Numbered from the stretch's first letter, positions 30,801-52,916 are shown. The stretch is DNA of 64,000 nt from Bugula neritina (GCA_964035545.1 OZ037766.1:32044773-32108772); one strand, 5' to 3'. Translations and numbers: made by a program. The notes: generated by a model from the letters alone, not told the origin.

Positions 30801-30942
30801 TATGATATACATATATAATACAGATACTATATATAGACAAGGGAATAGTACTACCTCCAGCCACTCCTGCCTGTAGGAATCGTCTTCGCATGTGGTAATG
30901 ATCCATTCGTCTCCCTGGTTTGCCCCCTGTAGCTTTTCCTCC
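2571..30942 (-). CDS. Constant exons of a TIR-domain + TMEM268-like membrane protein: 30855-30942, 22189-22284, 17828-17854, 16609-16774, 13679-13856, 13422-13557, 8249-8353, 7279-7419, 6657-6832, 6124-6240, 4911-5090, 4452-4598, 3517-3618, 2571-2810
   Basis: Every exon has an AG acceptor and a GT donor, and phases chain without stops: GGKATGGKPGRRMDHYHMRRRFLQAGVAG|GALGADMYEFDEDMEENPFIEDEFYDDEDFEE|EETEESESE|GSDSED...YHVFFYHSS...IIEN|SPNDLKVLTSEKDF...SRRTVLHCTQEFMESDYANYE...|EERRQKVILLVGPDIELP...|...|VPESLMKRGLQ|VTQGEFQEIL...TM...TM...|KYRIKIEEFNKRF...KLKLYFIYYNFEECQ|...MVTFM*. The TIR-to-8353 junction is inferred from phase only. Confidence 0.82.
7455..7540. repeat. (TAGTG)n pentanucleotide microsatellite
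   Basis: Visible tandem gtagt/gtagc units just upstream of the 7419 acceptor. Confidence 0.9.
8441..8549 (-). CDS. Internal alternative first exon V20 (phase 1, TIR-less isoform): MGRNKNKNASRRKRTKQRRHHQRNNMMSHGMTAAAE
   Basis: ATCATGG start, donor GAAA|GTGAGC, then an 87-nt stop-free intron to the acceptor at 8353. Confidence 0.68.
10847..11030 (-). CDS. Internal alternative first exon V19 (phase 1, TIR-less isoform): MRNNAQKHLHRSKLGGGVGTYTFEH...ESNVPSA
   Basis: ATCATG start, 61 codons + 1 nt, donor GCAG|GTAATC; lies downstream of all TIR exons. Confidence 0.65.
13422..16774 (-). other. TIR domain-encoding exons (16609-16774, 13679-13856, 13422-13557)
   Basis: YHVFFYHSS (box1, cf. YDVFISYS), KDF (cf. 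RDF), SRRTVL...EFMESDYANYE (cf. SRKTILVLSPNFLESEWCQYE), VILL...LPASLQRY (cf. IP..L), in the correct order and spacing. Confidence 0.82.
14751..14940. repeat. ~39-bp degenerate tandem repeat, each unit beginning CCAATCACA (5 copies)
   Basis: ccaatcaca..ctgtattxtatatcagctaat repeated. Confidence 0.8.
18623..18704 (-). CDS. Alternative first exon V18 (phase 1): MPNMSQIEQTPWDNFQLDWGYEGDGQS
   Basis: 27 codons + 1 nt, donor T|GTAAGT. Confidence 0.55.
19092..19257 (-). CDS. Alternative first exon V17 (phase 1): MGGTKGAKAAPSSAASGGQGKQQGGFYGQHLNNSAAGQLGGIFGEGASLWCSSNS
   Basis: GC-rich ORF, 55 codons + 1 nt, donor TCAG|GTAAAC. Confidence 0.68.
20736..20751 (-). CDS. Candidate alternative first exon V16 (phase 1): MGAYY
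   Basis: AAGATGG GGGCATATTACA|GTGAGT. Confidence 0.5.
21660..21752. repeat. 22-bp tandem repeat (acctgggggatatataagtaag) x ~4
   Basis: Direct inspection. Confidence 0.85.
21924..21960 (-). CDS. Candidate first exon V15 (phase 1): MELLNCFAAHGA, or a 12-nt phase 1-1 microexon at 21924-21935
   Basis: ATG...TTTTGCAG CTCACGGTGCAG|GTATCA; both readings preserve frame. Confidence 0.35.
24318..24339 (-). CDS. Alternative first exon V14 (phase 1, would join 22284): MEDERNF(G)
   Basis: ATG GAA GAC GAG AGG AAC TTT G|GTAAGG. Confidence 0.55.
24501..29755. mobile_element. Decayed Kolobok-like DNA transposon
   Basis: TTAA on both flanks (24497-24500, 29756-29759). Imperfect 24-bp terminal inverted repeats AGGCGGTAAGCTTCCAGGTTATTT / ACATCGTAAGCATCCAGGTTATTT (19/24). 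Internal remnants of a KolX/P2X7-C-terminus-like gene. Confidence 0.75.
27310..27903 (-). pseudogene. Degenerate KolX (P2X7 intracellular-domain-like) gene of the Kolobok element
   Basis: Fragments EEWCK*KKFQAQKAKEQSECCQS, KFVTDHPG and FCSYRVLIFWLFPNLHRRQRKPLSACLYN* follow the WCxCxxC...ECxCC / ITxHPGF / YRxFxxW..L....RxPLPxC motif order, with stops and frameshifts. Confidence 0.7.
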
Positions 30943-33498
30943 CTGAAATACTTGTATATGTTAGTGAACTATAATTAAATAGCTGATGTTAAAACCAGGT
31001 GCTCTTATGATTTAATACCCACCATTTTATATTCACCAATTCTACCCACTAATTTGAATTTGAAGAAATGTATAAAAACAGAAGATAATATTTAGACAAC
31101 TAGAAATACAAATACCCAAAGGAGGCTGATCATAGAGATAAGATGTAGTTACAAAGTATTACAAAATAAAACTGGAGCTGCCAATGCTGATGGGTACTGA
31201 TTTTGGAGCAGCATAATATTCAAGTCGGTGAGAGATAAAGTGCTGTCTCTATAGTACATGTTTCGAAACATCCCACCAGACAAATTAAGAAATCAGATTC
31301 CTTGATGTGTTTGAAGGCTGCATTTTGTTTGCAAGGGCACAATTTTTAGCACGCTAATTTATATATCTCTTTGGAGATTAGTGTTGCAACTTTAATTGAA
31401 ATTCTCTTTGTATTATGACGATGTTATAATATGTCATCTGTATGCCTAAATCTACCTGCAAGCTAAGAGAAAATACCAATGCTTGTTATAGTGAGACAGC
31501 AGCTGTTTGAGCAATGTTTCAAAGCTGTACTGTAGGCTATGATTAGTGTTTACTTTTTTACTTTTTGAAAAGTTAGCAGCAATTCTGATTAAACTGCTGC
31601 CAATAAACTAATATGTATCAGAGTATGGCAGCTTTGGAACTGGCAAGAATTGTACCTTACTGTCTTGTATAGTTACTGCTTGTAATACGCATAACAGAGT
31701 GTTCATTTACATGGGAATATACAATTTAAACTTTATTTACATTGATTTTTGAATTATTTTATTATGTTTCTCTATTATATTATTACATATTCTGATTTTA
31801 TAGACGTACGAGTACACATTCTAATACAGCTATTCAAGGTGACCAAAACTACCTACACACTACATTGTCAATGTAATACTAAAAATTAACAATTTAAACT
31901 ACTAAACATAAACTACAGCACATATTACTATACTGAGTTAGATAATTACATCTAATAATGCACAGAGTGTATAGATTAGTTAGAAAACACAAGTGGCTGA
32001 GGGAATTAATCTCATTTTTGCTTATAAATTATTAAACAATAAACAAAGAGAGTTATACATGTTATAAGTGGGTATATATTGAATAGTTCAAGTGAAACCA
32101 CAGCAGACATTACCGTAAATCAGTTTGAGGTTGCATAACGTCTCATAACATATGCCAGCTCTGGACTTCGAGCAATACATTTATAATACTGATCGATGTA
32201 AAAACTATTGCAATCTTGTTTAATAGCCATAGTATAGCAGTTTTATAGCAATGGATTAGCAGCTTCATAGCAATAGTTTAGTAGTTTTTTAGCAACAGTA
32301 TTTGATATAGCAAATGAAAAGCATATGGCCGACATCTTTGAAGAGAAAATGTAGCTATTGTACCGCACATAAGTTTTATTTACACTGGAAACTAAAAACT
32401 CAATAACTTTTCTATTTAGCACAATCTAGCAGTGAGTTTGTATTTGGTAACTTTATCATCTTGTATTTTGTCGGTAGCTTTGTATCATTCAACTTGAGTT
32501 TGCTAAGCAATACGAATATTTTATCAATATATAAACATTGAAATACCAATATGACCTTAGGCTACAATAAAGCAAAATTCAAAATAAAAGAAATTATCAA
32601 TTTTTCATTTGAAAATCAACAGCTAACTGCATGTTGGGGTTAAGGTGCAAAGAGAGGCCAGAAAAAAATCATCACAACCTTTAAAAGAACATTTTTATGT
32701 GAAAAATGATAAAAACTGAAACCGTAAACACTAAAAAAATTAAAAGAACAACCTATATAGTAGCAGCTGCATCTCACAAGAGAAACCTAAGCATAATTTC
32801 ACTTTAGTTTTGCACTGAAAGATTTCTCTGTGCACATATACATATATAGTGATAAATTACTCCTACGAAATGTCGTAGACAGTTATATGCAAAGTCTTAT
32901 TCAGCTTTAAGTGTTACACTTGAAAACCTTTTAAGATGGTTATGAAGCCATTACATAGTGGGTCTAAGTATATGTGTAGCCATTTTAGAGATTAATAATA
33001 TTGTAATATGACATATTGATAATAGGTTGTGTTGAAAATGAAATTAACAAGCTACTATATATACAATTTTCATCCTAAAATACAGGCACATGTAATGTTT
33101 GATGACTTTGGAGTGTGGTTATTGCAGTAAATGAATAAAATAATTCACATCTTGAATGTTGGTATAAAATTTAACGCAAAAGTATTTGTGTCTGTACATA
33201 AATATGTTCTACGTTAGAATATTTTTTACTTTGTCAGTAAAGCAAATGGCAACTATTATTTTTAATACTTGAATTTTTTTCAATCAGATGCTTTTAAAGT
33301 CTAAGAACTAACTGAACAAGACGAGGGTGGGGAGAGGGTAGTAATGTTATTTGTTGTATGACTCATTTAAAAGTACGTTAAGGAGTCACCAAAATGTACT
33401 TTAGTGTAGATTATGATTTGCTTGAGAAAAAAAATGGATAAATTTACTAAAAAATTTGTGTCTATAAACCAATTTACAAAGCAGTTTGAATTGCCTAC

Positions 33499-33645
33499 CC
33501 CTGGCTTTCGTGCATTCTTATATTTTTTCTCATTGAGCCTACGACGTTGTAGACCTCTTTTATCTGGGCGTCTCGTAGCTTTCCTTGTGTGATTTATTCT
33601 CATTAACTTTGCCCCTGACCTTCTGTTGCCCGCTATTCGCCTCAT
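33499..33645 (-). CDS. Alternative first exon V13 (phase 0): MRRIAGNRRSGAKLMRINHTRKATRRPDKRGLQRRRLNEKKYKNARKPG
   Basis: 49 codons, donor GGG|GTAGGC. Confidence 0.68.
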
Positions 33646-35310
33646 CGTCAAAGCTGGAGAGTATTTTTCTCTATCTTGTTCTTCTTCATTTAGAGTCGGC
33701 TGTTTCCTGTCTCCAGGCAGAAAGAGCGACAACTTGTCCACCAGGAGATAACCTTGATACTGAACTCCACAAGCAATATTCCAGACTGCTCAGGTCTCGT
33801 GGGAACCAGGTATTTGATTTGAAAAATGTTTATCCAATTACACCTGCAGGGCCTCTGACCCGCTGCCTCTGCTGACACGCACTTGTAAGTCAGCGAAACT
33901 CAACTCGAGAATTACCTGGATGTAAGTGCAGGGAGAATTATTATTTTAACATGTGATTTGTTTACTTATAGGAGAGTATTGAACATTGAGTGCCATATTA
34001 TACTCAGTCCGAGTAAATGAAGTGTTTGCATATTGATTCCCGGGAACATTAATATATCATTAAAGTGTGTTTTGTAGCCCTAGAATGCACTGCATACATC
34101 AAGCTCGTCTCAGACTTATAATGACAAATGAGTGTGATAGTAAGTTGAAGCCTATCAATTCTCTGTCAAGTATTATTATGATTTTTGCACAAATGTCTTT
34201 GTCACAAAATATTGTGCTAGAAATTTTTTAATTCTTTGACAGTATTTTTTTCTCAACTTAGTCATGATTTCAAAAACTTTACTTTTCGAGATGATGTGAT
34301 ATCCAGGAAATTAAATATATATTAGAGATTACTTGAGCCATGACATGCAAGCCTGTCCCATGAAGGCTGCACCCAAGGCTTGAGTAGTTTGAGGAATTGA
34401 ATTATCTTGTGATATGAATGGTTTATTAAGCAGTATTCAGTTCAGTGCCCAATAAATCTTTGTCGATAATTAATGTGGGAATCAGAGAAACATCACATAT
34501 TAAGGTTATTAGGCAGCAGGTAAATTGCATTACCTATCAGGCAAGTATGATTACGCAAAGGGAAGACAACCAACACATGACTTAAGGGAAGTCTCGTGAT
34601 CAAACAATATACTGTTCCACATAAAATGGATTTTGTATTTTTCAGATGGCAATTATATACGATGTTGCAATGTCTACCATAAACTAGAAGATGCCTGTGA
34701 ATAATCTCCATATTTATGAGTCAGGTTGGCAGCAGCTTGCGCTGCCTGCATAATATGACCTCTGTGTAGTGCACAGTTGAACTCATGCACTGGAAGACAA
34801 CTCCTCAACTGCTGTATCTGATGTAGCTCAGTACTAACTTTGTGACATTTAACAACTTCCAATTTCCTATGTTGTGACCTTTAACTTTGCTAAGTTGTTC
34901 AAAAAAGTTCAACTCTGTTCCAAAAAAACACAATATCAAAGAGTGGGAGCAGTAGGCTATCAAATAGCGGGAGCAATAGGCTATCTTTGAAAGTGATTTA
35001 CAAAAGAATCCTGATTGACACACTGATAATATTCTAAACATTTAAAATGCTTTTTATCCTCCAGATTTAAGGATGTACTTCATAGTATATACAACTGTGC
35101 ATGACAAAAGTTATGCCAACAACATTGATGCTGTTGTTGCAGCCTACGTTAAGGCCTAAGCTAATGCTAGGGTCAAATTTTAAGATGCATGACTGGTTAA
35201 TCAGCTTAGTAGAAACTAATATACTTGAGTTGATGTATAGAGAGCATGGAGGCATCAAATAGAATACAACCTACAGTCAGATCATATGATAAGAATATGA
35301 GAATTATCAC

Positions 35311-35571
35311 CTCTTGACTCTTTTCATTTTCGTTGTACTTATCAGCGTTTTTCTTGTCATTATCTCTCGAGGTCTCCGTTCCTTCTAAATTGAACGAGGC
35401 TTCTTCTGTCTTCCTCTTGTTGTTCTTCCTGCGATTCTTCCGGATTACTTTGACTTGCCGTCTGCGAACTGTGTAGCTCCGCCCTCCTTCCATGGAGAAG
35501 CGTTTCTTTTTGACGTCTGCTTTGCTATTCGGATTGGACGATGTCCGTTTCATTTCCAACTGTCTTCCCAT
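35311..35571 (-). CDS. Alternative first exon V12 (phase 0): MGRQLEMKRTSSNPNSKADVKKKRFSMEGGRSYTVRRRQVKVIRKNRRKNNKRKTEE...NEKSQE
   Basis: AAAATGG start, 87 codons, donor GAG|GTGATA. Confidence 0.72.
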
Positions 35572-37242
35572 TTTATAGACTTGTTGCACGCACCCAGAGA
35601 GTTAATTTAGAAAGTAATTATTTGTGATTTAATTAGGTGAGAATTATCACACAGGCTCGATTTACTGACACTGAAACTAAAGAGATGTGACGACTAAGTA
35701 ACACCACAACCAAATGATGGTGGCTGCTATAGGGAATTATTGTGTGATGAAATGTCACAGAGCTATGGGACTTGGGCGACTGTTTAGCTTATATCAATTT
35801 GCATTTCATGTATGCTAAGGGAAGAACCCCACTAGGCACTGACATTATAACTGTCCGTAAAATGTCATAATCTTTGTATGTCGTAAGGTAGCATTTTACA
35901 ACTCATTTATAGTCTGAGAGTGTTAGTTGGTTTAGCATCAGCAGATGAAGGGGATTGGCTAGCTAGTGGCAGACTTTGAGAATAAGAAATTAGTCCACAA
36001 TTAAACTATTCTCGTGTTATTTACTTCTTGCTACAGACACTTACACTTGTGTGTAAGTATATATTTACCAAAAGTAGTTTGAAATCATCCATTTAGAAAA
36101 CTCTTAACAGAGACAGAGAAAGGTTAGAGGTTACAGTTCACTGGCATATCCTATATACCTGCACGTGGTGCTGAAGTCATTGCAATGCCACCTCACTCTA
36201 CTTGACTATTGATTAATTATTACGAGGACAAAGTAATGATAAAAAACAACATCTTGTATGTAATCAAGCTAATAACGTACAAAGCTAATCAGCTGCTAAC
36301 TCATTATAATATTGATAAATGTTGCAAAATAAAGCTAGACTCAATACTTTTAATAAAAATAATGTTTATTTTCAGAAACATGTGTTAATGTTTGAAAATT
36401 ATTGTCAGTTATACAGGTAATAGTTTAAGATCTTGTGATTCTAATAGCTTTGGAGGAAAGGTGAACCTCTCATACAAAGAGACTGACTTTGTAGCCCTGG
36501 AAACCTGGCAATGTGCATGTGGTGATCCCATAGAGCTATGATACCAGAGTTACAACTGCCGGATTTTTAAGGGTATTTCACAGTGTTTGGTAGAACAACT
36601 ATTATTGTACATGACTGAAGTTACTTCCTGCCCATATATATGTAGAAACCTTCACGTATTTATGTTGTCATGGAGATATAATGCTTTAGGTATAACACAA
36701 TAGACTCAGGTTCTTCAAACAGGAGATAACTCTTAGAAATTTGTCTTTTATAAAGGCACATTTTCTTGCTACTGTTTTGGTTTGTGTCGTTTTTACAATA
36801 ACATTTCACATGTATAGTGGAAGGTGTTTTAACTTTCTATTCTTGAATTTCTGTATACATTTTTATGCAGTTACTAATTTTCTAATTGTTGTATAATAAA
36901 GGCCCTCCAAGGAACTCCTCCCAACTACATGCTGATGGAGATTAAAATCTAATACTAAGAACTTGGTATATAAGAAGTCACTAATTAGGAAAGTGTGACT
37001 TATTTAAAAGTTTAAATTTTGAATGAAGAGTTCCTATTAGAAGTTGTCTCATCAACTGATTTCCTTAAATCTATAACCACTACAGTGAAATTGTGGATCC
37101 CTCCCCAAAACATAACGGAATGCTTATGAACTACAGGCTATATATGAGTGTATGTTTGTAAGAGTAAAAGAAGGGTCGTCTGCTTATGCACCCTTACAAG
37201 ACTTGTCAAACAGTTGAAAGAACATATGCCATAAAAACTCAC

Positions 37243-37332
37243 CGTCTTGTGGGCTGCGCGGTTCTTCTTGTGTCCATGTTTGTGCTTAGAGTGACTTTTC
37301 TTGTGCGTAGTCTTGTGACGCCTGTGGCTCAT
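37243..37332 (-). CDS. Alternative first exon V11 (phase 0): MSHRRHKTTHKKSHSKHKHGHKKNRAAHKT
   Basis: 30 codons, donor ACG|GTGAGT. Confidence 0.78.
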
Positions 37333-38211
37333 CCCCTTCTGCAAATACACAAGAACTTGTAGAACTTAGGCTACTAAAAAATGATAGCCTCTGGTTCTAC
37401 GCTCCTGGAATACTTACAGATCAACATAGGCTCCTTTCAAACAAGAAATGTAAGTAAAAGTAGGTATCAGAGTAACAGTAAGTACTATACACTAAGCTGT
37501 TTTCCTTATTGACTATACATAAAAACCTGTAATTGAAATAATTATCTATTCCTAGACATAATTACCTGCACACCAAGTAATTATGTCTACTATGTGTGTT
37601 TGATAATAGATAATTCAGTTTGTAATGAAAGAAAGCCTTTAACAGGAATATTGATACCTTGAATATTTATTTAAAGGGTGGGCAACTACTGTAGAAACAG
37701 TAATCTTCAGTCAATTTAGCCTTCATACCATTTGAAAAAACCTATAAAGTTTGATAGCCAGCGAAACCACTCTAACCTAATGTCAAAGTGATAAAGTGTA
37801 AAGCAATATCTAGCTACTTGAACAATTTTGTATGAATTAACAAATTTTCCTGCAAGTTGAAATATGCTTGGCCCAGAGAATTTTTGACTTGAAAGAAAAA
37901 TTTTAGCTTATTGATTATAAATGCATAAATATGCATATATTCAATTGAAAGTAATGTAAAAATAATAGTATCGTATTTTGGCAAGCCACTTGTAAGATCC
38001 GATGCATTCATTAATCTAATCTTTTTTCAAAATTTAAAAAAATATGTAGTTATGTATCTTTCCCATTCCATAAAGAAGGGCAATGTTGAATGGTAGTGAA
38101 ATACAAGTAAATTAAAAACAGTTATACTTATATTGCAATATTTCCAGTTGAGTCACTTTTGGAACTACATCTGAGGTCCTTAACCACGTTCTCAGGTATA
38201 AGGTAAAGTGG

Positions 38212-38748
38212 TGTCAGCTAGTTATAGTGTAAGTGTCAGCTAGTCATAGTGTAAGTGTCAACTAGTCATAGTGTAAGTGTCAGCTAGTTATAGTGTAAGT
38301 GTCAGCTAGTCATAGTGTAAGTATTAGCTAGTCATAGTGTAAGTATCAGCTAGTCACAGTGTAAGTGTTATCTAGTCACAGTGTAAGTATCAGCTATTCA
38401 TAGTGTAAGTGTCAGCTAGTCATAGTGTAAGTATCAGCTAGTCATAGTGTAAGTATCAGCTAGTCACAGTGTAGGTATCAGATAGTCACAGTGTAGGTGT
38501 CAGCTAGTTATAGTGTAAGTATCAGCTAGTCATAGTGTAAGTATCAGATAGTCATAGCGTAAGTATCAGCTAGTCATAGTGTAAGTATCATCTAGTCATA
38601 GTGCAAGTATTAGCTAGTCATAGTGTAAGTGTCAGCTAGTCATAGTATAAGTATCAGCTAGTCACAGTGTAAGTGTCAGCTATTCATAGTATAAGTATCA
38701 GCTAGTCTTAGTGTAAGTATCAGCTATTTATAGTGTAAGTATCATCTA
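38212..38748. repeat. 22-bp minisatellite (cagctagtcatagtgtaagtRt) x ~24
   Basis: Direct inspection. Confidence 0.93.
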
Positions 38749-39210
38749 ATCAACTGGACAATAAAGAATAATGATTAGTTCTCTTTGAAGTGTTGATTAT
38801 GTCACATAAGAATAATAAAGAATAATGAAAGTTGCTGTACAAGTATAGTTGAAGTATGTTGATGTATAATAAGTACTGATCTATTGAAATTATGACTGTA
38901 GAGTAAGGGTACAACAACCAAACCCATATTACTATATTACCATGTTACGTATATTATTCATACTTGTATATACAATATATTAGCCAATCATATTTGTGTA
39001 CGTAGTATTAGCCAATGACACAACCGCTGTTACAGGTGAAGCAAGAGGAAGCTATGTATTGCTATTGTTGACTATAATCACATATTCTCTAGTATTCAGA
39101 CTAAATTCTGCTCTACCATATCCTTATCAAATAACCACTGAATCTTTTGTCAACATCCATATTCTGAGCATTTATAGCCCAAGTACCTCAAATAAATATA
39201 ACTAGCTTAC

Positions 39211-39240
39211 CCTTACGCGGAGGTGCCTTCTCCTACTCAT
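39211..39240 (-). CDS. Alternative first exon V10 (phase 0): MSRRRHLRVR
   Basis: AAAATG start, donor AGG|GTAAGC; a second in-phase donor CGC|GTAAGG lies 6 nt earlier. Confidence 0.7.
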
Positions 39241-40814
39241 TTTATAAACTATCAAATTTAGCTGGCTAAAGAAATTCGTGACTAAAGCAAAGTTTTGCTC
39301 TACTGTAACTGCATGGAGAGAAGGGCATAATGAAAGTATCAAGTAAAACTAACTAAATAAAAGCACTAAACAAATTCAAATTAAAGCAATAAAATAGCTT
39401 GTGAAAGCATAGGTTTTGATTGGGGGTGGTGGATATAGCAATCAATAATGCAGCTGAGTTTTTTACAAGTCCACAAGCTAGCCTATAAAATCAGCATTAA
39501 TTTACTGTAGACTGAGAATGCAAACAGTGCACTAAGTTTTTTATGGGTTTTTTTCTACCTGCGCTATTTACACAAATCTGATGCATTAGCTAGTTTTTGT
39601 GTTATCAAGTATTGAGTTTATTAGTTGCCTACATAACAACTTCATTCATTATTCATATCACCTGCGGCAGTTGCTACAGCAATAAATGATTCAGTTTTTA
39701 ATGCAATCTGCATACAATTGCTATCAATTACCATTTTAAATAGGCTGCTATCTATATCTATACTAGCTCATTCTAATTTTCATATTTCTAATCTTTTATA
39801 TAATTAATCTTTTAAACTATTCATCAATAATTAATATCAGGGATGAGAAGTTGCATTAGAAATGAGCAATAAATATGACATTTGGAGTCATGTCCCTTTT
39901 TGTTAAAAAATAAAGAGGAAGTTTCCAAGAAACCTGTATAATTCTTTACAAGCTATTGAATACCCATAATTATTACATATAAATTCTTTTGCAGAATAAA
40001 ACAACATATATAACTCATTGGTATTGCAGAATTTCATTCTATCCGTTAAAAATTCTCTATGCATTTTAAAAATTAATCTGAAATAAAATAAAAAAAGCTT
40101 ATTCAGATTATTTTCTCGACACTTTAACAATAATCACGAGGAATACAATTCTCCCACCTCTGCTGTCTTCAGATCAGAATGAAAAAGTGAACTACTACCC
40201 ATCACCAGAGTGTCAAGCTAAATCTTGTGTTATACACTCACATAATATGTCACTTGCTAAGAGCAAATCGATGCTGCCACAGAAGTGGGTGCTGACTGAA
40301 GTTGAGTGACCACACACACACTCCAACAGCTGTTTGCAAGTAAACACATCTCTACAGCAGCTGTTTGCAGGTAAAAACACCTCTACAGTTTTGAAAAGCC
40401 AACATTAGCATTTATTTACATTGCCTGATATAAAATATTGTAATTATATCATATTTTATTAATAATTAGTTAATTAATCTATGTCAATGTATCTACTGTT
40501 CATGCAGATTAGGGCAGTGGCTGACAGAATGTTATTGCATATATGATAATGAATCACACCAAGTCAGTTATTAAAATATCATGTCATTCAAATATAAATG
40601 TTTTCAGTAAATATTCCATATGCCTGAATATCAATTCGCTTTTCTAATAGTTTGTTAACTTCCTAATTAAAAGTCAATTGAGATTTACACTGCAAACCAG
40701 AATGACTTGGGAACATGCAGGAGTCAAAACATCAGCAAGTTTTTATACTTTCTGAAACCAACTAAATCCGCTCAATTATTTAGCAGCCGGTTGAAAATTA
40801 AATAAAACTCAATC

Positions 40815-40817
<3 letters not shown>

Positions 40818-40896
<79 letters not shown>

Positions 40897-41046
40897 TATG
40901 TGTGTATGTGTGTATGTGTGTGTGTGTGTGTGTGTATGTGTGTATGTGTGTATGTGTGTATGTGTGTATGTGTGTATGTGTGTATGTGTGTATGTGTGTG
41001 TGTGGTGTGTATGTGTGTATGTGTGTATGTGTGTATGTGTGTATGT

Positions 41047-41126
<80 letters not shown>

Positions 41127-41152
41127 TGTGTGTGGTGTGTACGTGTGTGTGT
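40818..41152. repeat. (GT)n / (GTGTGTAT)n compound microsatellite
   Basis: Direct inspection; source of the spurious VC/HT ORFs. Confidence 0.97.
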
Positions 41153-41164
41153 TATAGCCGCTAC

Positions 41165-41233
41165 CTTTTTGTGTCCCGTCTTATGCTTCGTATGCCGCTT
41201 AGACATACGCATTCTCCTGGCGTGACTCGGCAT
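41165..41233 (-). CDS. Alternative first exon V9 (phase 0): MPSHARRMRMSKRHTKHKTGHKK
   Basis: ACCATG start, 23 codons, donor AAG|GTAGCG. Confidence 0.7.
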
Positions 41234-42494: not shown

Positions 42495-42560
42495 AGGTCC
42501 TAGGTCTAGAGTCTTAGAACCTATGGCTATGTGAGGGCTATGCTGAACACCTGTACGCAT
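42495..42560 (-). CDS. Candidate alternative first exon V8 (phase 0): MRTGVQHSPHIAIGSKTLDLGP
   Basis: 22 codons without stop, donor CCT|GTAAGT; less basic than its neighbours. Confidence 0.45.
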
Positions 42561-44739
42561 ATAGGGAGTAGGTATAAGTCAACGCTAGTAAATTTTTTCA
42601 CATGAGAAAAATTAAAAACAACACCAGGAATTGTATCAAATCTTATCATCAATAAAATGTATTCACAATGAAGCAAAGTGGCTGAATATTTATTTTTACG
42701 CACAAATGAGCTGCCAGTGTTTGATGCTTGTTACATAAACTAGACTGTATCAACTTTCCTGTATTATATTTACATCAACCGTAAAAAGCAAGTGGAACAA
42801 CATTAATAATTCTTGTGAATATATAGCATTGGTTGTGCAATAATAAAGTTCAATTATTGTACTTAGACAATGAATTGAATAGGAAATAGCACTAAATTCA
42901 ATGTCTATTCTTATTCCAACTGTGGGGACAGAATACTAAAAATTGTGTAAAGACTAACAATATTATGGTACTTATGATAAATTATTCTTCTTATAAGCAA
43001 TACAATATATTACATATTTTATAATATAACTTAATATATGCAATAAAGTAAAATACGTATAGCAATTTTATAGTACGGCATGTGGCTGAGTCTAGTATAT
43101 TATAATATAATATAATATAATATAACATAATATGATATAGTATAATATAACAGTATAATATAACACAAGGTAATAGACCATAAAATAATTTGTAATGTAC
43201 TGTAATACAACATAATTATATAATACAATAACGAAAGTAGTTATAAACAATAAACAGCCTTAAAACAGTTCGACAGTGAAAGTAGAAAGTTTATGTAATT
43301 AAAAACTAAAAAATTGTCACATTAAAACTAAGAGTTCTAGAAAAAACTGATAACTAGCTATATTAAATGCTGCACTGTTTAAACTGTTTAGAACCAATAA
43401 GAGTTCTTTTATTAGAGATAAACTAAAGTTAAGTTGATCATATAACAACCATATGTAATAAATTGTTATAGGGCTCTTTCATAATACTTCTATTTCAACA
43501 GCCTTCAGTAAACTATACATTACATGGTGCATTAGGAGGGGGGGGGGTACAACCCCCAGCATCATACAACAAACAAGAATTTTTACAATATTAGAAAGTC
43601 TAATCTTGTCAATGAAACAGTAAACGTGTTTTAAGTATGTTTGACTTAAAACATGATTGAAATCTGGCCTCTTAATTTCATTTGTTTTAACTTGTACTAC
43701 CAACTTACAACTTGTTTTAGTAAAAAGATATTTACTAACATACTCTCTACCATAAGGAAGTTCAAGTCCATTGTTTTCTACAAACTTATTATAAAAAGCA
43801 CGAGTGTATAACTCCCACTCAGCAACAACAATTAGAAAAGTAAGGTAATTGCTTAATGAATGCTAAAGTTGCCTGTTTTATGCAGAAAAGAAAATAGTTA
43901 TTATTTTACTCGTTCATAAAGTAAAACAAAGGAAATATTATCGCAGCCTTGCAATAATATTTCTTTTTTTATTTTTTATTTGTTTTTCACTTTTTTATCT
44001 TATTTTTAAATAATGTACACTATAGCAGTGATAGTGAACCTATCAGTTAAAACATCTGATTATGCCAAAGTAATATTATTTAAATAACACTAGTTATTAT
44101 TGTAATGCAAATGTAAGCTAGGATGTTTTTCTCACCTACATAAATTATATATAGTACACTAACATTAGAAATTATCATTCGAAAATATCATATAGTATTA
44201 TCGAGTTGCGTTATAACATGTACAGTATACTATATATAGTAGGCTTATTATTGTATAATACTGTATAATATACTATATACGTATATACTATGTTATATAC
44301 TATATAATATATAGTAAGTTCATATTATATATTACTAGACAGTAGTAAAGTTATACTTATATACAAAGCTTATGTCTGCTGTTGTACCTCTCCACTACTC
44401 AGCAACTACCATAAATATAGCCTTAGATTGTAGCTGCACTAAAAGCAGGCTATGTCAAGGGTATATATCTATAACTCAGTGTCATGTAAGAAATAGGCTA
44501 AATATTCAACTCTAACCGTTATCAGCCAAACTCTCAAAAATCACAATATTCTGTTTTATTCACCCTTGATAATATCTTAGTATCAAAAAATACATCTTAT
44601 GTATGCAACTTCAGTATGACAGACTGTATATTTGGTGTAACTACTAGCCACACATGTTTTAGATAATCATTTGTATTGCACGACCCCCTGTCTGTCTGTC
44701 TATCTAAATTCTAAACTGATGCTTGTGAATATAGCTCAC

Positions 44740-44748
44740 TCCTGGCAT
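44740..44748 (-). CDS. Candidate alternative first exon V7 (phase 0): MPG
   Basis: ATG CCA GGA|GTGAGC; very short, could occur by chance. Confidence 0.35.
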
Positions 44749-44868
44749 GAGAAAAATAAGAATTATTTACAACCATAATGCTGTAACACACGCAGCACAC
44801 ATAACACACATAGCACAAGGTAACACAACACACACAAAACACATACAACACACAACAAACATACGACA

Positions 44869-45152
44869 CAGCTACTATACATACTGTATATAAGATGTCA
44901 CATCAGCTACTATACATACTGTATATAAGATGTCACATCAGCTACTATACATACTGTATATAAGATGTCACATCAGCTACTATACATACTGTACATAAGA
45001 TGTCACATCAGCTACTATACTTACTGTACATAAGATGTCACATCAGCTACTATACATACTGTACATAAGATGTCACATCAGCTACTATACTTACTGTACA
45101 TAAGATGTCACATCAGCTACTATACATACTGTATATAAGATGTCACATCAGC
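44869..45152. repeat. 35-bp minisatellite (cagctactatacatactgtatataagatgtcacat) x ~8
   Basis: Direct inspection. Confidence 0.93.
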
Positions 45153-45467
45153 AGACTATTTGGTGGAGACACATTAGCCAATGGCAATACATTATCAGAA
45201 GCTGCAAGTAATTAGCTTAATGTTCTAACTGAACTGTTGTGACACATGAATTCTTTTAGTCTTATTTTGCCTTTATAATTGAGATAATGTTTCTAAGTCA
45301 TTTCTAATAATATAATAAAACCATATTATTAGAAGTATAATAATGAAACATAATATTATACTATTCAGCCTACAGTTTATACACAAAGCCTGCTTGAACG
45401 ATATTCTTAACCAACAACTTTAAGCTGTCAAACTCAAACGAATGGAAAGTGATGCCAGCATTCAAAC

Positions 45468-45518
45468 CTTTCTATGCCTCTTCTGGTGAAGATGGTGTCT
45501 AAGGCCCCTCGAAGGCAT
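45468..45518 (-). CDS. Alternative first exon V6 (phase 0): MPSRGLRHHLHQKRHRK
   Basis: 17 codons, Arg/His-rich, donor AAG|GTTTGA (weaker). Confidence 0.62.
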
Positions 45519-46484
45519 ACCGAGTGAATCTAAGACTAAACCTTGTAGGACACCGACTATGTAGTGTAGAACTACCAGCGACCTCTACTTATAGCAGATT
45601 ATATCTCCAGAGGTCAGTGATTGTCTGAGAAGCAATCGGCAATTCACAGATTTGAAAATCACAATAACAGTTGAAGAAACTGTATTTGTTTTGTTTATTG
45701 GAAATTGTAAGGAACAATACTCACTCAATAAGTGTATCAAGTGTTAAAGCACTTGCTCAATCAATTGTCAGGAACAACTTGTCAATTTACTTCATATTAG
45801 AATATTGCTTTCAAATATGTTAAATATTTGCTGGTAGCATTGAAGTCAGCCCTTAAGTAAAGTTTATGCAGTGAGTACTGCACTGCGGGCACACACACAC
45901 CCCCCATTCCTGAGTTGTACAAGCCTCAGGGCTGGTCAAATTCTAGAAACACTTTTGTGGGTTAGTGATGAGATGTACTTTTAGTTTTCTTAGTCCTTTA
46001 AAAAACCTATAGTTATTGTAAAGGTTTTCAGCCCTCTTTTTAGTTTCTGTTTAAACTTTCTCAATTATTTAAACTTTACTAATTGTTATAAAGCTTCTTC
46101 ATTTTAAAAGTTTATGAAACGGTATAATTACCCATTCCTATATACAAGCAATTGACACAGTAACTGATTTTAAAGAAATGAAATAAAGTAAATAATTCAG
46201 CCAACTTACAGCAGGCATCTTTATCTGAGTAGATGTGTTGATATGTAGTCAGCACATTTGTATAATGGTATAAAGTCAGCAGTATGCAGTATAAAGTCAG
46301 CATCAACAGAAGACTTAAGAGTCACAGTTGAGGATTATCTCTCCTTAGCTAATGGAGCCCTCAGGCTACACAGACATGGTCTATACTCTAGAGCTGGACA
46401 TATTATAGTCGGTCACACTAATTGATAACTTATATTTCCCATCATACAACTTATCTCTCCAATTGGACTTATATAATATAATTT

Positions 46485-46842
<358 letters not shown>

Positions 46843-47034
46843 TTTCACATATGCTTGATTAACTACAAAAACAAACCATGCAGTATTCAAGTACAGTATA
46901 CTCTATTCATAGAGTTGAGAATACCATGTTTCAGCTGCAGAAAAAGTTTTAAAGTCAAATTTTTTATGCACACTAAAATTGTGATTTTTCAAAATTGTAT
47001 AATCAGCATTGAAGACAAGCAAAATTAATCTTAC

Positions 47035-47049
47035 CTGGCCACGCCTCAT
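47035..47049 (-). CDS. Alternative first exon V5 (phase 0): MRRGQ
   Basis: ATG AGG CGT GGC CAG|GTAAGA, a near-consensus donor. Confidence 0.62.
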
Positions 47050-48894
47050 TCTTCTATAACTTAATTTATGCAATTACAAGTAAAAAAAATCGCATGTCAA
47101 TCAGAGGTTGAAATGCTGCTACTGCTGCTGCCGCGACTAAACTTCCTTATTACGGGGTATACAGGTATAGTGTGAGCCTAGCAGAGCGCAGGTAAAGTGT
47201 TGTCTGTACTATAAACATTTCACTACTTAGGTGTTTCAGCAAGGAGTGGATGCAGATTTGTTGCTTTTTCCAGGGGTTGTGCGCAGTATATTAGTAAATG
47301 AAGGACAGCATTTAAGAAGCTAATAGAAGCTGATGAAAAAGAATTCTTTTTTCAACAGTTAAATTATATGTATGTACATTAGTTACTTTGATTAGATTTG
47401 ATAACAAATAGTGGCAGCAACAATAATAAAACTAGCTGAAGCTAAGATGTATAATACAGTAGTACTCTGTAATGTTTAGGAAGCATTTTAGTTTATAGAA
47501 TCATGATTAGTATTTTAAACTCAAGTTCTAACTTGCTTGAATACTTTTTAATACCCATGGTCTCTCACTGAAATATAACTGCAAAACTTTGATAGTTTTA
47601 TTAAAAGCTTTTGAAAATAGTAAATAATACAATATTGAGAGCAAGCATCGATTATAGAACCCCTTACACCACTTGATGGGTCTAATTACTCGGTATTAAG
47701 AGAGGCTCACATAAAACCTTGTTCTGTTTTCATATATAGCTGTTAAAGTGTAGTTATCAATACATAACATGCATAATTATACATATTTACTCTGGGCTGT
47801 TGGATTACATTATCTAATAAACAATACGAAGTATAGAAATATGACATTTAGTAGCAAAAAGAGAACTGTACTATTTGCTGTGAATATTGCCTTAGAGCTT
47901 ATAATAAAAGCTTTTAATAGAGTGCAAACTTATAAATAATATTCTAGCTAATGATAAAAATACTTCCTAGTATTATTATTATATAAACAAGTGCATAGGT
48001 GAATGCACTTTTAAGCCTGACCCACTTAAATATATATGAGTAAATTTTGCATAACTTTAATGGTAAATAATATTACATTTACTATTTTGATAAAAGAGAT
48101 ATAACTTGCATTGCAAAAATGTAAATTTGATATTAAGAAGCAACGAATTTATTACTTTTTTTCATAAATAAAATCACAGACTGTTACAATACATACACAC
48201 AGTAGTCATGAGTAAAGTGAGTTGAACAGGGATAGTAGGTAATTAAAGAAGTTGTCCTCCCATAAAAGGAGCTTTTATTACCAATATTATTTATTGATTT
48301 GAGTTTCCAGATTTTACTTTGGTTTTTATTATATTGATAAAATTATCTTAAAATTGCTCAAGCACTATATTACATAATACATATAGCTTATGATACACAA
48401 AGGTACATATTATATAAAATAACTATTATTGTTATACCGATGACAAGTTCACAAGTCTTGGTGTGATCAAATGATCACAATATTTAATGCTCGCCATAAA
48501 TAATTTTATCCTGGCTACTAACAATGCACAACTCAAAAACCCTAGAGCCTATACACATATTTTACATATAAAGTAATAATACAATATAATAAATATGATA
48601 TAATAAAGTAATTTGGTAAAGTAATAGTAAAGTATAATTAATAACACATAATATCATAAACTGATGATCCCTTATGTATTTAGAACATAATAATTGTCTA
48701 ATGAGATAAAAAGCAAGGTGCATCTCATATTGAAAACTAATATTGTAATAACAAAGAGCTATAAATAGAAACTGTGACTCATACTCAATAATTAATACAA
48801 ACCCTAGTCATAGTCAAACAACTCCCAACTTGAATGTTATCGGAATAACTCAAAGGCGTGAATTGAGATGGTGACAAACAGGTAAGAAGCATAC

Positions 48895-48948
48895 CTGGTG
48901 ATTGCGAGACCGAGCCATCACCTTGTTCCTACCGCCTCTACTAGCCAT
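48895..48948 (-). CDS. Alternative first exon V4 (phase 0): MASRGGRNKVMARSRNHQ
   Basis: GCCATGG start, 18 codons, donor CAG|GTATGC. Confidence 0.72.
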
Positions 48949-49826
48949 GGCATGAAACCCTAACTTACTACCTTCTGTCTCAAAGAGCTGTCTCAAATTA
49001 ACTTAACACCTTAAGATATAGAATCACAGCTAGTCTCCTATTAAACACTGTTTACTGAGTAGAAGCAACATTCAGCCTAGCCTGCAAATCTCTCATTTAT
49101 TTCATGCACCTGGGTTCAGTGAAAGGTTACTAATAGTATGTTATTCATTCATAGATTCATCTATCTACACTAGTAGTGACTTTAATATCTCACTCTTTGG
49201 TTTATGGTTTCAAAAACTTAAGAAGTTATCGTAGAATATAATTGCAATGAAAGCTAAACTATATAGTTGCAAACTTATATGGACCTCAGGCTAATATAAA
49301 CAGAGAGGAGATGATTATTCAAAGTGAAAGCATAAAGTAACAGCCTTTATGATAATTAATATCAAAGTTTGATATTAATATAAACAAGAAAATAGTTAAT
49401 TGTTTGCAGTGATAAAACACTGGAGGGCTAATTGTATCATCCGTTTACATCTTTCTCTGCACACTCAATCACTATCAGGTGAAGAAAATACGTTGATTGG
49501 TGCGGCATGTGTGATGTAATAAGGGGCAGGCTTAGTCTGTCTAAACTTAAAGACCTGCCTACTCTTTATACTCGTATAGAGTGGCATTCGAAACTCTTTT
49601 TACAAAGAAAATATACGATAACTTTTATACGACATACAATTTTAAACGTACGAATTTGCGTGTTATGCTAAAAATAGAATATAATTATTTCCAAGGCCTT
49701 TTTTTTATCAGAAAATTACCACTACAATTAAAATCTTTTAGTAACTTTTAAAAATATTATTCTGAAGCACAATTACCTCATTCATACAGCCATACAATCG
49801 CAAATTGTCTCAACGTATAAACTTAC

Positions 49827-50024
49827 ATCAGCTGTTGAGCCGAAACGTCCAGCCCCCCTATGTGCAGCATGTCGCCCCGCCCTCCCGGCGCCATGACGAG
49901 CACCCGACCTACCACCCGAACCTCGGCCCCGCTGTTTCCTATTACATTGCCCTCTTCTGTCTCGTAGACTTCTAGATCTTGAGCTAGAAGTTCCAGTTCG
50001 ACCTCGCCTACCCCCACCAACCAT
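49827..50024 (-). CDS. Alternative first exon V3 (phase 0): MVGGGRRGRTGTSSSRSRSLRDRRGQCNRKQRGRGSGGRSGARHGAGRAGRHAAHRGAGRFGSTAD
   Basis: AAAATGG start, GC-rich island in AT-rich DNA, 66 codons, donor GAT|GTAAGT. Confidence 0.78.
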
Positions 50025-51206
50025 TTTTATTTACAGTTGTGCAACTACCACAACTTTCAACCTCCCAATAATACTGCCCATTAAATAGTTTCATCTGACT
50101 TCCCCTGAGATTTGGAGCAGTAAATGCTTAGCAAATAAATGTTCAGCTCCAATAATATATGTCAAGTTTTATTATGTCTTTCTCAACCATGCATATTACA
50201 TCTTCATTGTAACATGTATATTGCATCTTCATTATAACATAAATGTTATATCTCTATCATACCAAAGGAACTAGGAACTGAGTCATATATTATGTATTAT
50301 AAAGGCAGGTTTTAGTCATACGGAGGCTGACAACTACTGAAATGTCCACTTCCTTACTTATTATTAGTACATGCTACATATGGTGCTCACTAATTTGATT
50401 ATACATATGTCATATATAGGCCTAATGTAAATATGCTTTTATAGCCAAAGTTCTTGTTAACAATGAAACATATAGGAATATTGTGTAACATAGTAAAAGT
50501 AAAAGTGCAATGCAGTACATTTATAATATAATATATTATAATATAATATGATATAATATAGCATAGTATAATATAATATAATACAGTATAATATAATATA
50601 ATTGTATAGGAAGTAGATGAATGAGAGCCACTCATTATTACTGATGTTTCAAACACCAGTGTGTTGGAAACATCAGTTTGCTTTGTTTTTATATACATAG
50701 ATTAATGACAAAAGGCTCCCCCACCCCCCTCCTTATATTTGTTTCTAAATACTTTTAAGCTCATAAATATATTCAAATTATGTAGAAGTTTAATTTTCCA
50801 CAGTAAACTACAATAATATAAAATAACACATATATTATATATGTATTATTTTATATAAAAACATGGTGCAAGGTGAAATAATGCATTATATAATTCCTCA
50901 TAATAATTATAATACATTATATTACAAGTGAAATAATATAGCACAATATAATGTAATATAAAATGATATTATAACTCGCCTAGTCTGATATTCAAATTGT
51001 ATTCATGCGATCCATGGGTACGATATACTATGTAGGCTACACATGTTTATAGTGCGCTAAAACTAACTTATTATAGCCTAAAATGAAAGTAGGTAAAATA
51101 CGAGACCAAATTATATTATTTTGCTGTAAAGTTTACTTAAGAATCTGCTTTGGCTATTATTAACAATAATTATGAAATTAAATTCTCAAGATGGAGATAT
51201 TCTTAC

Positions 51207-51254
51207 ATGGCGTCTGCCAAGGGAGTGGCCGTGTCGGTGATGGTGGTGCCTCAT
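51207..51254 (-). CDS. Alternative first exon V2 (phase 0): MRHHHHRHGHSLGRRH
   Basis: Kozak-like GCCATG, 16 codons, donor CAT|GTAAGA. Confidence 0.75.
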
Positions 51255-52315
51255 GGCTGTGAACCGCCGGTTGTGGTGTGAAATCAATGCAGACGATCTC
51301 GAAAGTGATAACAAATATTACGATTTACTAACCAAAGCCTTTGAGTTCAAAATCATTACTACTGATATTTACCTCTCCCAAACTGTCTGAATATTATTAT
51401 GCAATACTGGAGTTATGGAAGAAGATTATAACTCTTTTAGACAGGTATACTAGGAATTAGGTAAATTAGTTATTAGGGGGAGATAACTTACTGATTCTAG
51501 TTAATATATAATTACTTTAACATGTTCTGATGGAACTGAGTTTTAATAATTTAGTAAAAGCTATTGAGTTGAAATGTTAGCGAGTAAATTAATCATTAGA
51601 TGCAATCTAGAATAATCTAGAATACTTCTCTCTTCACTATTAACTTATAACAAAACTGCATGCAGCAATTATTGAAGATTGGCTAGCGAAATCATATATC
51701 CATCATCTCTTACGAATTAGAACTCTCGGTTCACATCTTTGTAATATATGCAAACCACCAATATTAAAAATAATTTCATCATTTATTAAACCTACAGATA
51801 GATTAAGCTACTCCCATGGAAAGTGAAAAACAGAAAAAACATCTGTTACTATTATATAAGACCTAAGCTATACATAACCTTTGTATCACAAGGCATGATG
51901 GTGGTTAGTGAGTGTAGACAAACCAAACATTTCTGAGGGGAGAAACACAAACTTAGAGTCAGCTGGCTTAGTCATCGCACACTAAGTATAGTATGATGTG
52001 TTGATTGAGTGCTCATAAAATACTATAATATTATGTTGAATAGTCTGAGCTGTCTTTAGCATAGTCTGAGTTCTACTGAATTATTATGGCATAGTTGAGA
52101 AGCTGTTTGCTCATAATTCTCCACCTTCAATTTTAAATCATTGTTAGGAACAAAGGCTAAATTTAAGAACATTTGTTTCTTGATGCAAAATTTATATTTA
52201 AAGGTAATTCCCACTGTATTTTTGAGGGTGGGGGGGGGGTCGAGTCATTCATAAATAAAAAATACTCAAATGTATTTTACAGTACACTATACAAGATGAT
52301 GCAATGTATACATAC

Positions 52316-52423
52316 CATTACTCTGCGTTTTGTAAGTCGTGCCCTTCGACCTTTGCCCCCACCATTTTTGGAGCCAACTTTCTTGCCGCGACCACTAGAT
52401 TTGCTCTTAGTTTTACCCGCCAT
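52316..52423 (-). CDS. Alternative first exon V1 (phase 0): MAGKTKSKSSGRGKKVGSKNGGGKGRRARLTKRRVM
   Basis: ATG at 52423, 36 codons, donor ATG|GTATGT. Confidence 0.75.
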
Positions 52424-52706: not shown

Positions 52707-52916
52707 AGTGACACTAAGAGAGTAGTGAGTTATAGAGTAGTTAGTGACACTAAGAGAGCAGTGAGTTAGAGAGTAGTTAGTGACACTAGAAAGGCAGTGA
52801 GTTAGAGAGTAGTTAGTGACACTAGGAGAGCAGTGAGTTAGAGAGTAGTTAGTGACACTAGGAGAGCAGTGAGTTATAGAGTAGTTAGTGACACTAGAAA
52901 GGCAGTGAGTTATAGA
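52707..52916. repeat. 36-bp tandem repeat (agtgacactaagagagcagtgagttagagagtagtt) x ~6
   Basis: Direct inspection. Confidence 0.9.

Follow-up and report, generated by a model that had tools for sequence, protein, structure and literature searches.

The window analyzed here, a 64,000-nucleotide stretch of Bugula neritina DNA, carries on its minus strand a gene whose product combines a TIR domain with a TMEM268-like two-helix membrane domain. Judged from sequence, it is a candidate many-start TIR gene: a bryozoan membrane gene of immune type, with ten or more alternative, conserved start exons upstream and four putative internal starts. The shared body begins with C1 (30855..30942, phase 0 to 1), whose frame, as read in the preliminary description, is confirmed by the RMDHYHMRRR motif conserved in all homologs. 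It continues on the same strand with C2, which encodes an acidic tract (22189..22284; 16 D/E in 31 aa), the acidic C3 (17828..17854), C4 with an acidic linker and the start of the TIR (16609..16774), C5 with the TIR core (13679..13856), C6 with the TIR end and a phase-1 donor (13422..13557), C7, a linker with a phase-1 acceptor (7279..7419), C8 with a Cys-containing juxtamembrane region (6657..6832), C9 with the start of the TMEM268/DUF4481-like domain and TM1 (6124..6240), C10 spanning TM1, loop and TM2 (4911..5090), C11 (4452..4598), C11b (3862..3978), which matches Watersipora, C12 (3517..3618), and C13, the last coding exon, with an MCFCQ motif and the stop (2571..2810). To these are added an acidic/aromatic cassette exon on the minus strand (24318..24371, phase 1-1), whose peptide is identical in the sister Bugula genome, 71% in Watersipora, and absent from every database model examined, as well as a 12-nt minus-strand microexon (21924..21935, phase 1-1) that also occurs in database model P0019.

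Searches were run exon by exon, and full-length comparisons used the database proteins P0012, P0016, P0017, P0021 and P0037. The TIR exons of the window match those of the homologs P0021 and P0012, on which the fold searches were done: Foldseek found the MyD88 TIR (E 2e-5), a profile search found TLR2 (E 0.0016), and Pfam TIR_2 stayed below its cut-off. The fold resembles the TIRs of MyD88, TLR, TRAM and MAL, and the TLR-type BB-loop Pro-Gly is absent, the sequence reading DF-K-(S/T)-D where TLR has DF-I-P-G. The Bugula and Watersipora copies retain the Glu at the position equivalent to TLR2 'YEL', which we take to be the TIR NADase glutamate; in P0018, a distant homolog, the residue is Cys. 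The membrane domain matches PF14800 (TMEM268/DUF4481) with E 9.5e-5 and 22.3 bits, under the 25-bit gathering cut-off, and its top Atlas structure match reached TM 0.41, from a model of pLDDT 57. An ERF4/GOLGA7-like fold was not supported for this domain, PDB comparison having returned generic helical hairpins only (Z up to 8.8). There are two TM segments only, with no hydrophobic segment before residue ~400 and none ahead of the TIR; no signal peptide was found ahead of the TIR, and the N-terminal 150 aa are unstructured in the model. The N-terminal tags are thus modeled as cytosolic, on the same side as the TIR. The acidic tract carries a net charge of about -31, and the basic block one of +19 to +34. 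There is a TIR_2 cluster, mostly from molluscs, in which 13% carry DUF4481; the named close relatives returned by our homolog searches were all bryozoan, and named molluscan relatives were not reached.

Upstream of C1, the preliminary description had listed 13 ATG..GT segments on the minus strand, all in phase 0, and every one of them is present; as variable first exons, ten of the 13 hold as coding candidates. Eight of these, on the minus strand and in phase 0, form what we call Tier A: V1 (52316..52423; 36 aa, 14 K+R), in which a phase-1 GT at 52363 scores slightly above the phase-0 donor; V2 (51207..51254; 16 aa, His/Arg); V3 (49827..50024; 66 aa, Gly/Arg), with 16 synonymous and five non-synonymous codons against the sister Bugula, in a frame-specific manner; V4 (48895..48948; 18 aa), with an identical peptide, two synonymous changes and a retained donor there; V5 (47035..47049; MRRGQ), where 15/15 nt and a strong donor are retained next to 18 mismatches in the 100 nt upstream; V6 (45468..45518; 17 aa, His/Arg), with a weak donor (GTTTGA), retained, and three synonymous and one non-synonymous changes; V7 (41165..41233; 23 aa), 78% identical to its Watersipora counterpart; and V8 (39211..39240; 10 aa), with ATG and donor retained in the sister genome and a positional counterpart at Watersipora L015:13308. 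Tier B lies closer to C1, likewise on the minus strand and in phase 0: V9 (35311..35571; 87 aa), downstream of the hub exon H, with 11 synonymous versus two non-synonymous changes against the sister Bugula and orthologs in Watersipora and L026, and V10 (33499..33645; 49 aa, 20 K+R), with orthologs in Watersipora and L026 and, across three species, in paralog 2. Two of the 13 segments failed as coding exons. At 44740 (MPG) there is no conservation: the sister genome lacks the donor and differs by two changes, both of them non-synonymous. At 42495 the ATG has become TTG and the donor is lost there despite 65/66 nt identity.

The remaining segment, H (37243..37338, minus strand; 32 aa, 12 K+R, 8 His), is an internal phase 0-0 exon and not a first exon: its acceptor, AG followed by AA(G/A)GG(G/C), is present in five genomic copies, its own ATG, 6 nt past the acceptor (37338), is CTG in Watersipora paralog 2, and two different 5′ partners are spliced to it in paralog transcripts. 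These transcripts, L017 and L018, are two contigs from paralog 2 of a related species rather than from this Bugula locus; the point where they part is precisely the H acceptor, and what lies 5′ of it (18 and 64 nt) found no placement on the C7 paralog copy or the Watersipora loci. They also contain the H–C1 junction, which genomic L028 reveals as a splice, so the proposal that all 13 segments join directly to 30942 has to be modified: two of them fail and H acts as an internal hub. RefSeq model XP_067945395.1 has V7 as first exon, joined to H. One Bugula sequencing run, DNA-like, revealed no joints over 30800-36700, the differences there being allelic variants only.

Can these short exons be explained by ATG..GT pairs that arose by chance in AT-rich intergenic sequence, a caveat raised for the shortest ones at their initial detection? 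This is true of 44740 and, as a coding exon, of 42495. On the gene strand there are 11 distinct basic ATG-ORFs with a donor, the best donor being in phase 0 in nine, whereas the opposite strand has two, neither in phase 0. Across 400 block-wise dinucleotide shuffles, the check proposed at the outset, phase-0 matches averaged 0.3-0.4 with a maximum of 3; the thresholds were chosen after the candidates were known, and a second enrichment run agrees. The comparison with the sister genome and with orthologs covers nine exons, V3 to V10 and H. Against the sister Bugula these nine have a dN/dS of 0.089 (p=2e-21), retain the reading frame, the phase-0 donor (9/9) and either the ATG or the acceptor, and show a synonymous excess confined to the proposed frame. 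Orthologous exons are collinear in Watersipora paralogs 1 and 2, L026, L023 and the C7 paralog, a set that takes in a third bryozoan, and between genera conservation begins at the ATG. Chance is thereby refuted for the nine exons, including the five-residue V5, and as a general explanation it has a negligible probability. At the level of sequence comparison, V3 to V10 and H are demonstrably translated and under purifying selection, in an order conserved across bryozoans. The tags are mostly not paralogous to each other (3/105 pairs at p<0.02; lengths 5-87 aa), in line with their first having been noticed as mutually dissimilar. Among the top candidates scored, array repeats are micro- and minisatellites outside the exons, which lends no support to the idea that the exons arose from repeats. 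An ORF at 27884-27645 that looked basic was set aside as part of a repeat with >100 copies, and there were no Rfam matches in 28000-54000.

Further candidate starts lie within the gene itself, and the phase of each candidate exon is that of the next shared acceptor: 0 ahead of C1, and 1 for the four intragenic starts. On the minus strand, Tier C comprises a putative first exon at 19092..19257 (55 aa, MG start, Gly/Ala-rich, phase 1), conserved in the sister genome and with MG-start exons at a similar position in paralog 2 of three species, and a candidate at 18623..18695 (24 aa, acidic, phase 1), for which the sister genome keeps ATG, frame and donor with three synonymous versus four non-synonymous codons, making it the weaker case. 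Tier D comprises two minus-strand, phase-1 exons that may give TIR-less isoforms, one at 10847..11030 (61 aa; 57% identity over 55 aa with Watersipora) and one at 8249..8549 (100 aa, basic start; 40% identity over 79 aa with Watersipora). The starts at 19257, 18695, 11030 and 8549, like the small exons 24371-24318 and 21935-21924, were not part of the preliminary description.

We consider it likely that this is a nested alternative-first-exon, and thus alternative-promoter, locus for a bryozoan TIR plus TMEM268-like two-pass membrane protein, with each V exon presumably the first exon of its own transcript. The initial proposal of one TIR-membrane gene served by many alternative coding exons at its N-terminus is upheld by purifying selection, collinearity and the alternative 5′ exons of the paralog. 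Tier A exons would splice to H and on to C1, the ATG of H serving non-coding leaders; Tier B exons would splice directly to C1; Tier C would enter at C3, leaving out the basic block and the greater part of the acidic tract; and Tier D would enter at C7, dropping the TIR. It could also be that one upstream promoter supplies a shared non-coding or trans-spliced leader to mutually exclusive ATG exons, in which case the proteins would be unchanged and the choice would be made by splicing. In L017 a non-coding piece is indeed joined to H, neither a TATA nor any other promoter signature was found upstream of the exons, where CpG o/e is 0.45, barely above the regional 0.39, and the acceptor model is weak, four exons having an AG that scores 2.8-4.1 at 80-133 nt upstream. 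However, such scores are within background (75th-90th percentile 3.2-4.1), the distances are not conserved between species, unlike for H, and, H excepted, none of the exons is preceded by an above-background acceptor, be it within 60 nt or at a conserved distance. Since the 5′ ends of L017 and L018 also differ, and starts within introns C2-C3 and C6-C7 would not be easily explained, we regard a shared leader as improbable. A chain of internal phase 0-0 cassette exons, combined as in the automatic Bugula model EB796_007747, does hold for H, P0019 links three of the segments, and the N-terminus of paralog 2 is long, is spread over multiple exons and joins at H. For the V segments it is nevertheless very unlikely, given that cross-genus conservation starts at the ATG, that in-frame stops lie 2, 4, 8 and 10 codons upstream of the ATG of V3, V7, V5 and V9, respectively, that transcripts and RefSeq models go from H directly to C1, and that one base missing from a homopolymer, in C1 of the assembly behind it, distorts P0019.

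As regards function, each start exon would place a different short, positively charged cytoplasmic tail on the same TIR membrane protein, and promoter choice would most likely set the localization and charge regulation of a TIR adaptor. That the disordered polybasic tails are sorting or regulatory tags, by analogy with known adaptors, is a tentative reading to which we give a little under even chances. The tails would bind acidic lipids or partners, and probably also the protein's own acidic tract, promoter choice would set the position of the TIR and the ease of its release, and TIR-less forms would act as scaffolds or decoys; against the analogy, the protein is already membrane-anchored, unlike TIRAP and TRAM, and its TIR has no TLR-type BB-loop Pro-Gly. 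With the same architecture, the Arg/Lys/His tails might instead be cytosolic sensors of polyanions (nucleic acid, LPS, polyphosphate) or of metal or pH, restrained by the acidic tract until a ligand frees the TIR to oligomerize. The uniformly polycationic, His-rich tails beside an acidic tract of matching size and the Glu at the 'YEL' position would fit, but many non-enzymatic TIRs retain that Glu, P0018 lacks it and Tier C tags are not basic; we think a sensor role unlikely. The initial interpretation as a protocadherin/UGT1-style barcode is not sustained, and stochastic, protocadherin-like promoter choice that gives each cell or zooid a recognition label is very improbable. The tandem array of at least ten same-phase variable exons before shared exons, each tag conserved in sequence, does recall such a system, but the tags are cytosolic and short, and no 5-7-mer in the 300 nt upstream of the exons survives multiple testing; the exons are moreover old and fixed in order, without the birth-and-death expansion of UGT1/Pcdh (PMC1885805). 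Returning to localization tags, a more far-reaching version seems rather doubtful to us: that at least 14 promoters, predating both the paralog duplication and the Bugula-Watersipora split, yield a whole range of TIR sorting adaptors, with TIRAP-like polybasic forms of graded charge, TRAM-like MG-start forms (possibly myristoylated) and decoys that lack the TIR, and that every such form serves its own cell type, life stage or zooid caste.

Public gene models have missed or mis-chained the locus, each giving one isoform, and the RefSeq models may be partly ab initio. Our literature searches found no paper describing this Bugula locus and no description of a many-start design on a TIR protein. 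Arrays of many variable first exons have been described mainly from vertebrates and chelicerate sDscam, and here one occurs in a lophotrochozoan, on an uncharacterized TIR membrane protein. Conservation of individual tags extends down to five residues, and two paralogs share the layout; selection has therefore long acted on isoform identity. The locus offers a direct test of whether invertebrate TIR signaling was diversified by swapping localization tags on one gene or by multiplying genes, and, for colonial animals, its first exons could provide markers to tell cell types or zooid castes apart.

Among known systems, the locus shares with clustered protocadherins, UGT1A, GCNT2 and chelicerate sDscam a tandem 5′ variable region in one phase and a shared 3′ constant region. 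In Pcdh/UGT1-type clusters, however, the variable exons are paralogs of one another, large and alike in length, which encode folded extracellular or lumenal specificity domains and have a shared promoter motif (PMC1885805, PMC9258826), whereas those of Bugula are small, mostly unrelated and apparently cytosolic and disordered, with no shared motif found among upstream 5-7-mers. For these reasons the locus is plectin-like rather than a protocadherin-type barcode. In plectin, first exons encoding 5-180 aa direct the targeting of isoforms (PMC3695321), and as in plectin (PLEC), NOS1 and the glucocorticoid receptor (PMC3695321, PMC1885805), many short, dissimilar coding 5′ exons of one phase precede common exons here, with additional starts that would delete an N-terminal domain. 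The likeness is one of architecture, homology to plectin not being claimed, and unlike in plectin the upstream tags are, with few exceptions, polybasic or His-rich, a hub exon with its own ATG is nested within the array, and the body is a TIR membrane protein. The weak, sub-cut-off PF14800 match tentatively relates that body to TMEM268/DUF4481 and invertebrate TIR_2+DUF4481 proteins, vertebrate TMEM268 being described as an integrin-binding membrane protein (PMC11169502); as PMC6321704 cites Gerdol et al., ecTIR-DC denotes numbered TIR families. N-termini that are basic or myristoyl-plus-basic give TIRAP and TRAM their position (PMC6901815). As in the TIR sorting adaptors TIRAP/MAL, TRAM and Drosophila MyD88, where a basic disordered tail or a myristoyl-plus-basic motif does so (PMC6901815), the tags here would position the TIR, perhaps by lipid binding. 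Those adaptors are soluble proteins with one tag each, whereas the Bugula protein has two TM helices and at least 14 alternative candidate starts.

The array of short exons on the minus strand is real and conserved. All 13 ATG..GT segments that the preliminary description had proposed as alternative first exons of a single TIR gene were found at their donors, each ending in phase 0. A blind scan of the gene strand recovered 11 distinct basic ATG-initiated ORFs with a donor, the best donor being in phase 0 in 9 of 11, and the comparison with shuffled sequence proposed in that description bore this out (a phase-0 count of 9, where 400 block-wise shuffles averaged 0.3-0.4 and never exceeded 3). 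Since the scan thresholds were set after the candidates were already known, more weight is placed here on the comparative tests than on the shuffle count, which is the one line of support for the candidate exons 52316 and 51207 (exons are named by their donors). A literature search, with most subscription journals outside its scope, found no paper describing the present locus.

The Bugula neritina assembly GCA_010799875.2, used here as a sister genome, is collinear with the window at ~85% identity. Start, frame and donor are kept there in nine exons (49827, 48895, 47035, 45468, 41165, 39211, 37243, 35311 and 33499), for which pS is 0.250, pN 0.027 and dN/dS 0.089 (Fisher p 2e-21); five shared exons gave a dN/dS of 0.047, and the synonymous excess is confined to the proposed reading frame. 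The idea of 13 first exons joining the acceptor at 30942 thus holds only in part: nine of the exons are conserved, but one of these, 37243, is internal, its acceptor being conserved, and two more of the 13 drop out. Exon 44740 shows two changes, both non-synonymous, and lacks its donor in the sister genome, and in 42495 TTG replaces ATG and the donor is missing. Despite these losses 65 of 66 nt are the same at 42495-42560, a stretch without an Rfam match that may be a regulatory element or a non-coding leader exon. Two non-basic ATG..GT phase-0 segments, 47711-47770 (identical over 20 codons) and 40158-40202, likewise persist in the sister genome, perhaps as additional exons, perhaps by chance. 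In the public Bugula assembly one homopolymer base has been lost from C1, the first shared exon (30942-30855; loss in the region of 30925, locus L019), and because of this the automatic gene model EB796_007747 is mis-chained.

Exon 37243 (37338-37243) is termed here the hub. Its acceptor at 37338 lies 6 bases ahead of its ATG and was found in all five genomic copies examined, as were the Lys-Gly codons behind it; in Watersipora paralog 2, CTG stands in place of the ATG. A related bryozoan provides two metatranscriptome contigs of paralog 2 that have hub and C1 in common and diverge upstream exactly at the acceptor. They represent spliced RNAs, since in a genomic contig with identical C1 the hub and C1 are separated by an intron. 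In one transcript the 5′ piece is a coding exon that is in frame and has an ATG itself; in the other it holds an in-frame stop, so that the hub ATG would serve. Predicted RefSeq models of both Watersipora paralogs likewise have the hub internal and C1 as the next exon. None of the exons other than the hub has, within 60 nt or at a distance that is conserved, an acceptor scoring above background.

The orthologous-locus comparison that had been suggested likewise gave exons in the same order. Watersipora subatra (L015) has orthologs of 41165, 37243, 35311 and 33499 at 52-78% identity, together with 2 extra basic exons, and a metagenome contig (L026) has orthologs of 37243, 35311 and 33499 plus one more exon. 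The gene has one paralog in the same genome (216 Mb, 321 contigs), on contig C7 (L005-L011, G000:C7:14402000-14449000), with at least 7 basic first exons, a hub exon and an MG-start internal exon. The order of its own phase-0 array is preserved in the sister genome and Watersipora paralog 2, and in part in L023; further upstream the paralog probably has a long Ser-rich multi-exon N-terminus, as in the Watersipora model P0037. The array layout is older than the duplication, because exons 33499 (z 7.7) and 37243 are matched in both paralogs. The paralog is followed immediately downstream by an apolipoprotein-like helical gene in at least 3 tandem copies that hardly differ from each other (L011-L012, G000:C7:14451800-14465000), and similar genes occur at the same place in Watersipora (L032).

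Exon-by-exon reading gave 14 shared coding exons on the minus strand, from 30942 to 2571. The TIR of homologs matched Pfam TIR_2 below the cut-off (E 0.0013), TLR2 in a profile search (E 0.0016) and, as a fold, the MyD88 TIR in Foldseek (E 2e-5). By profile comparison it is without the Pro-Gly of the TLR BB-loop, and therefore its partner may be other than MyD88. A TMEM268/DUF4481-like region in homologs was also below the Pfam cut-off (E 9.5e-5), with a TM of 0.41 against an Atlas structure. The two hydrophobic segments lie near residues 400-500 with none earlier in the protein, which puts the N-terminus, like the TIR, on the cytosolic side. A GC-rich transcript (L016, SRR17902662) encodes a distant homolog (38% identity) in which the acidic tract is preceded, as in the window gene, by a stretch of basic residues and by a related His/Arg motif.

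Within the gene itself there are four further minus-strand ATG exons, two ahead of C3 (19257 and 18695) and two ahead of C7 (11030 and 8549); they end in phase 1, the phase of the next acceptors, whereas the upstream exons are all phase 0. Watersipora has conserved counterparts of 11030 and 8549, and the sister genome has one of 19257, with MG-start exons of paralog 2 at a like position in 3 species; 18695 is the least supported. Variation is added by a cassette exon of phase 1-1 (24371-24318) and a microexon of 12 nt (21935-21924), both on the minus strand.

About 5.2 kb of the C1-C2 intron (24500-29756) is missing from the sister assembly and looks like a young mobile element, since an 80-codon stretch within it (27884-27645) recurs >100 times in the genome, mostly at 93-99% identity. 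Minisatellites with ~20-40 bp units occupy 38225-38742, 44790-45140, 52720-52900 and 53990-54290, and long AC microsatellites 40818-41152, beginning 12 nt past the 41165 donor, and 46484-46843.

Isoform selection through promoter choice is the best reading of the array; CpG and TATA signals at the candidate first exons were uninformative on promoters. Reads of one sequencing run of this DNA, genomic in character, gave no splice joints over 30800-36700. The eight tier A exons (52316 to 39211) would be spliced to the hub and thence to C1, although the frame would be equally kept without the hub, and the tier B exons (35311 and 33499) would join C1 directly. Starts at 19257 and 18695 would leave out the basic block along with the greater part of the acidic tract, and those at 11030 and 8549 the TIR. 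As exon sums, the basic block carries +20 to +34 in tier A plus hub and +19 and +24 in tier B, and the acidic tract about -31, which suggests that short tags gain charge from the hub and that the tags interact with the acidic tract. A short post-hub exon in paralog 2 (n=1) is at odds with this role of the hub. TIRAP and TRAM are placed by basic or myristoyl-plus-basic N-termini (PMC6901815), and plectin first exons, one just five residues long, send isoforms to different sites (PMC3695321). For these reasons we tentatively favor, by analogy, the view that the tags would help to sort a membrane TIR adaptor and to regulate it by charge. Sensing of polyanions or metals by the tags ranks below this and appears rather unlikely.

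The protocadherin/UGT1-style reading of the preliminary description is not supported, as three defining features of such clusters (PMC1885805) fail at this locus. Variable exons of Pcdh/UGT1 are paralogous duplicates, whereas those of the window mostly are not (3 of 105 pairs at p<0.02); they share an upstream motif, whereas none of the 5-7-mers in the 300 nt upstream is significantly shared here after correction for multiple testing; and they encode folded extracellular domains, which the tags are not. Rather, the locus probably works like the plectin gene.
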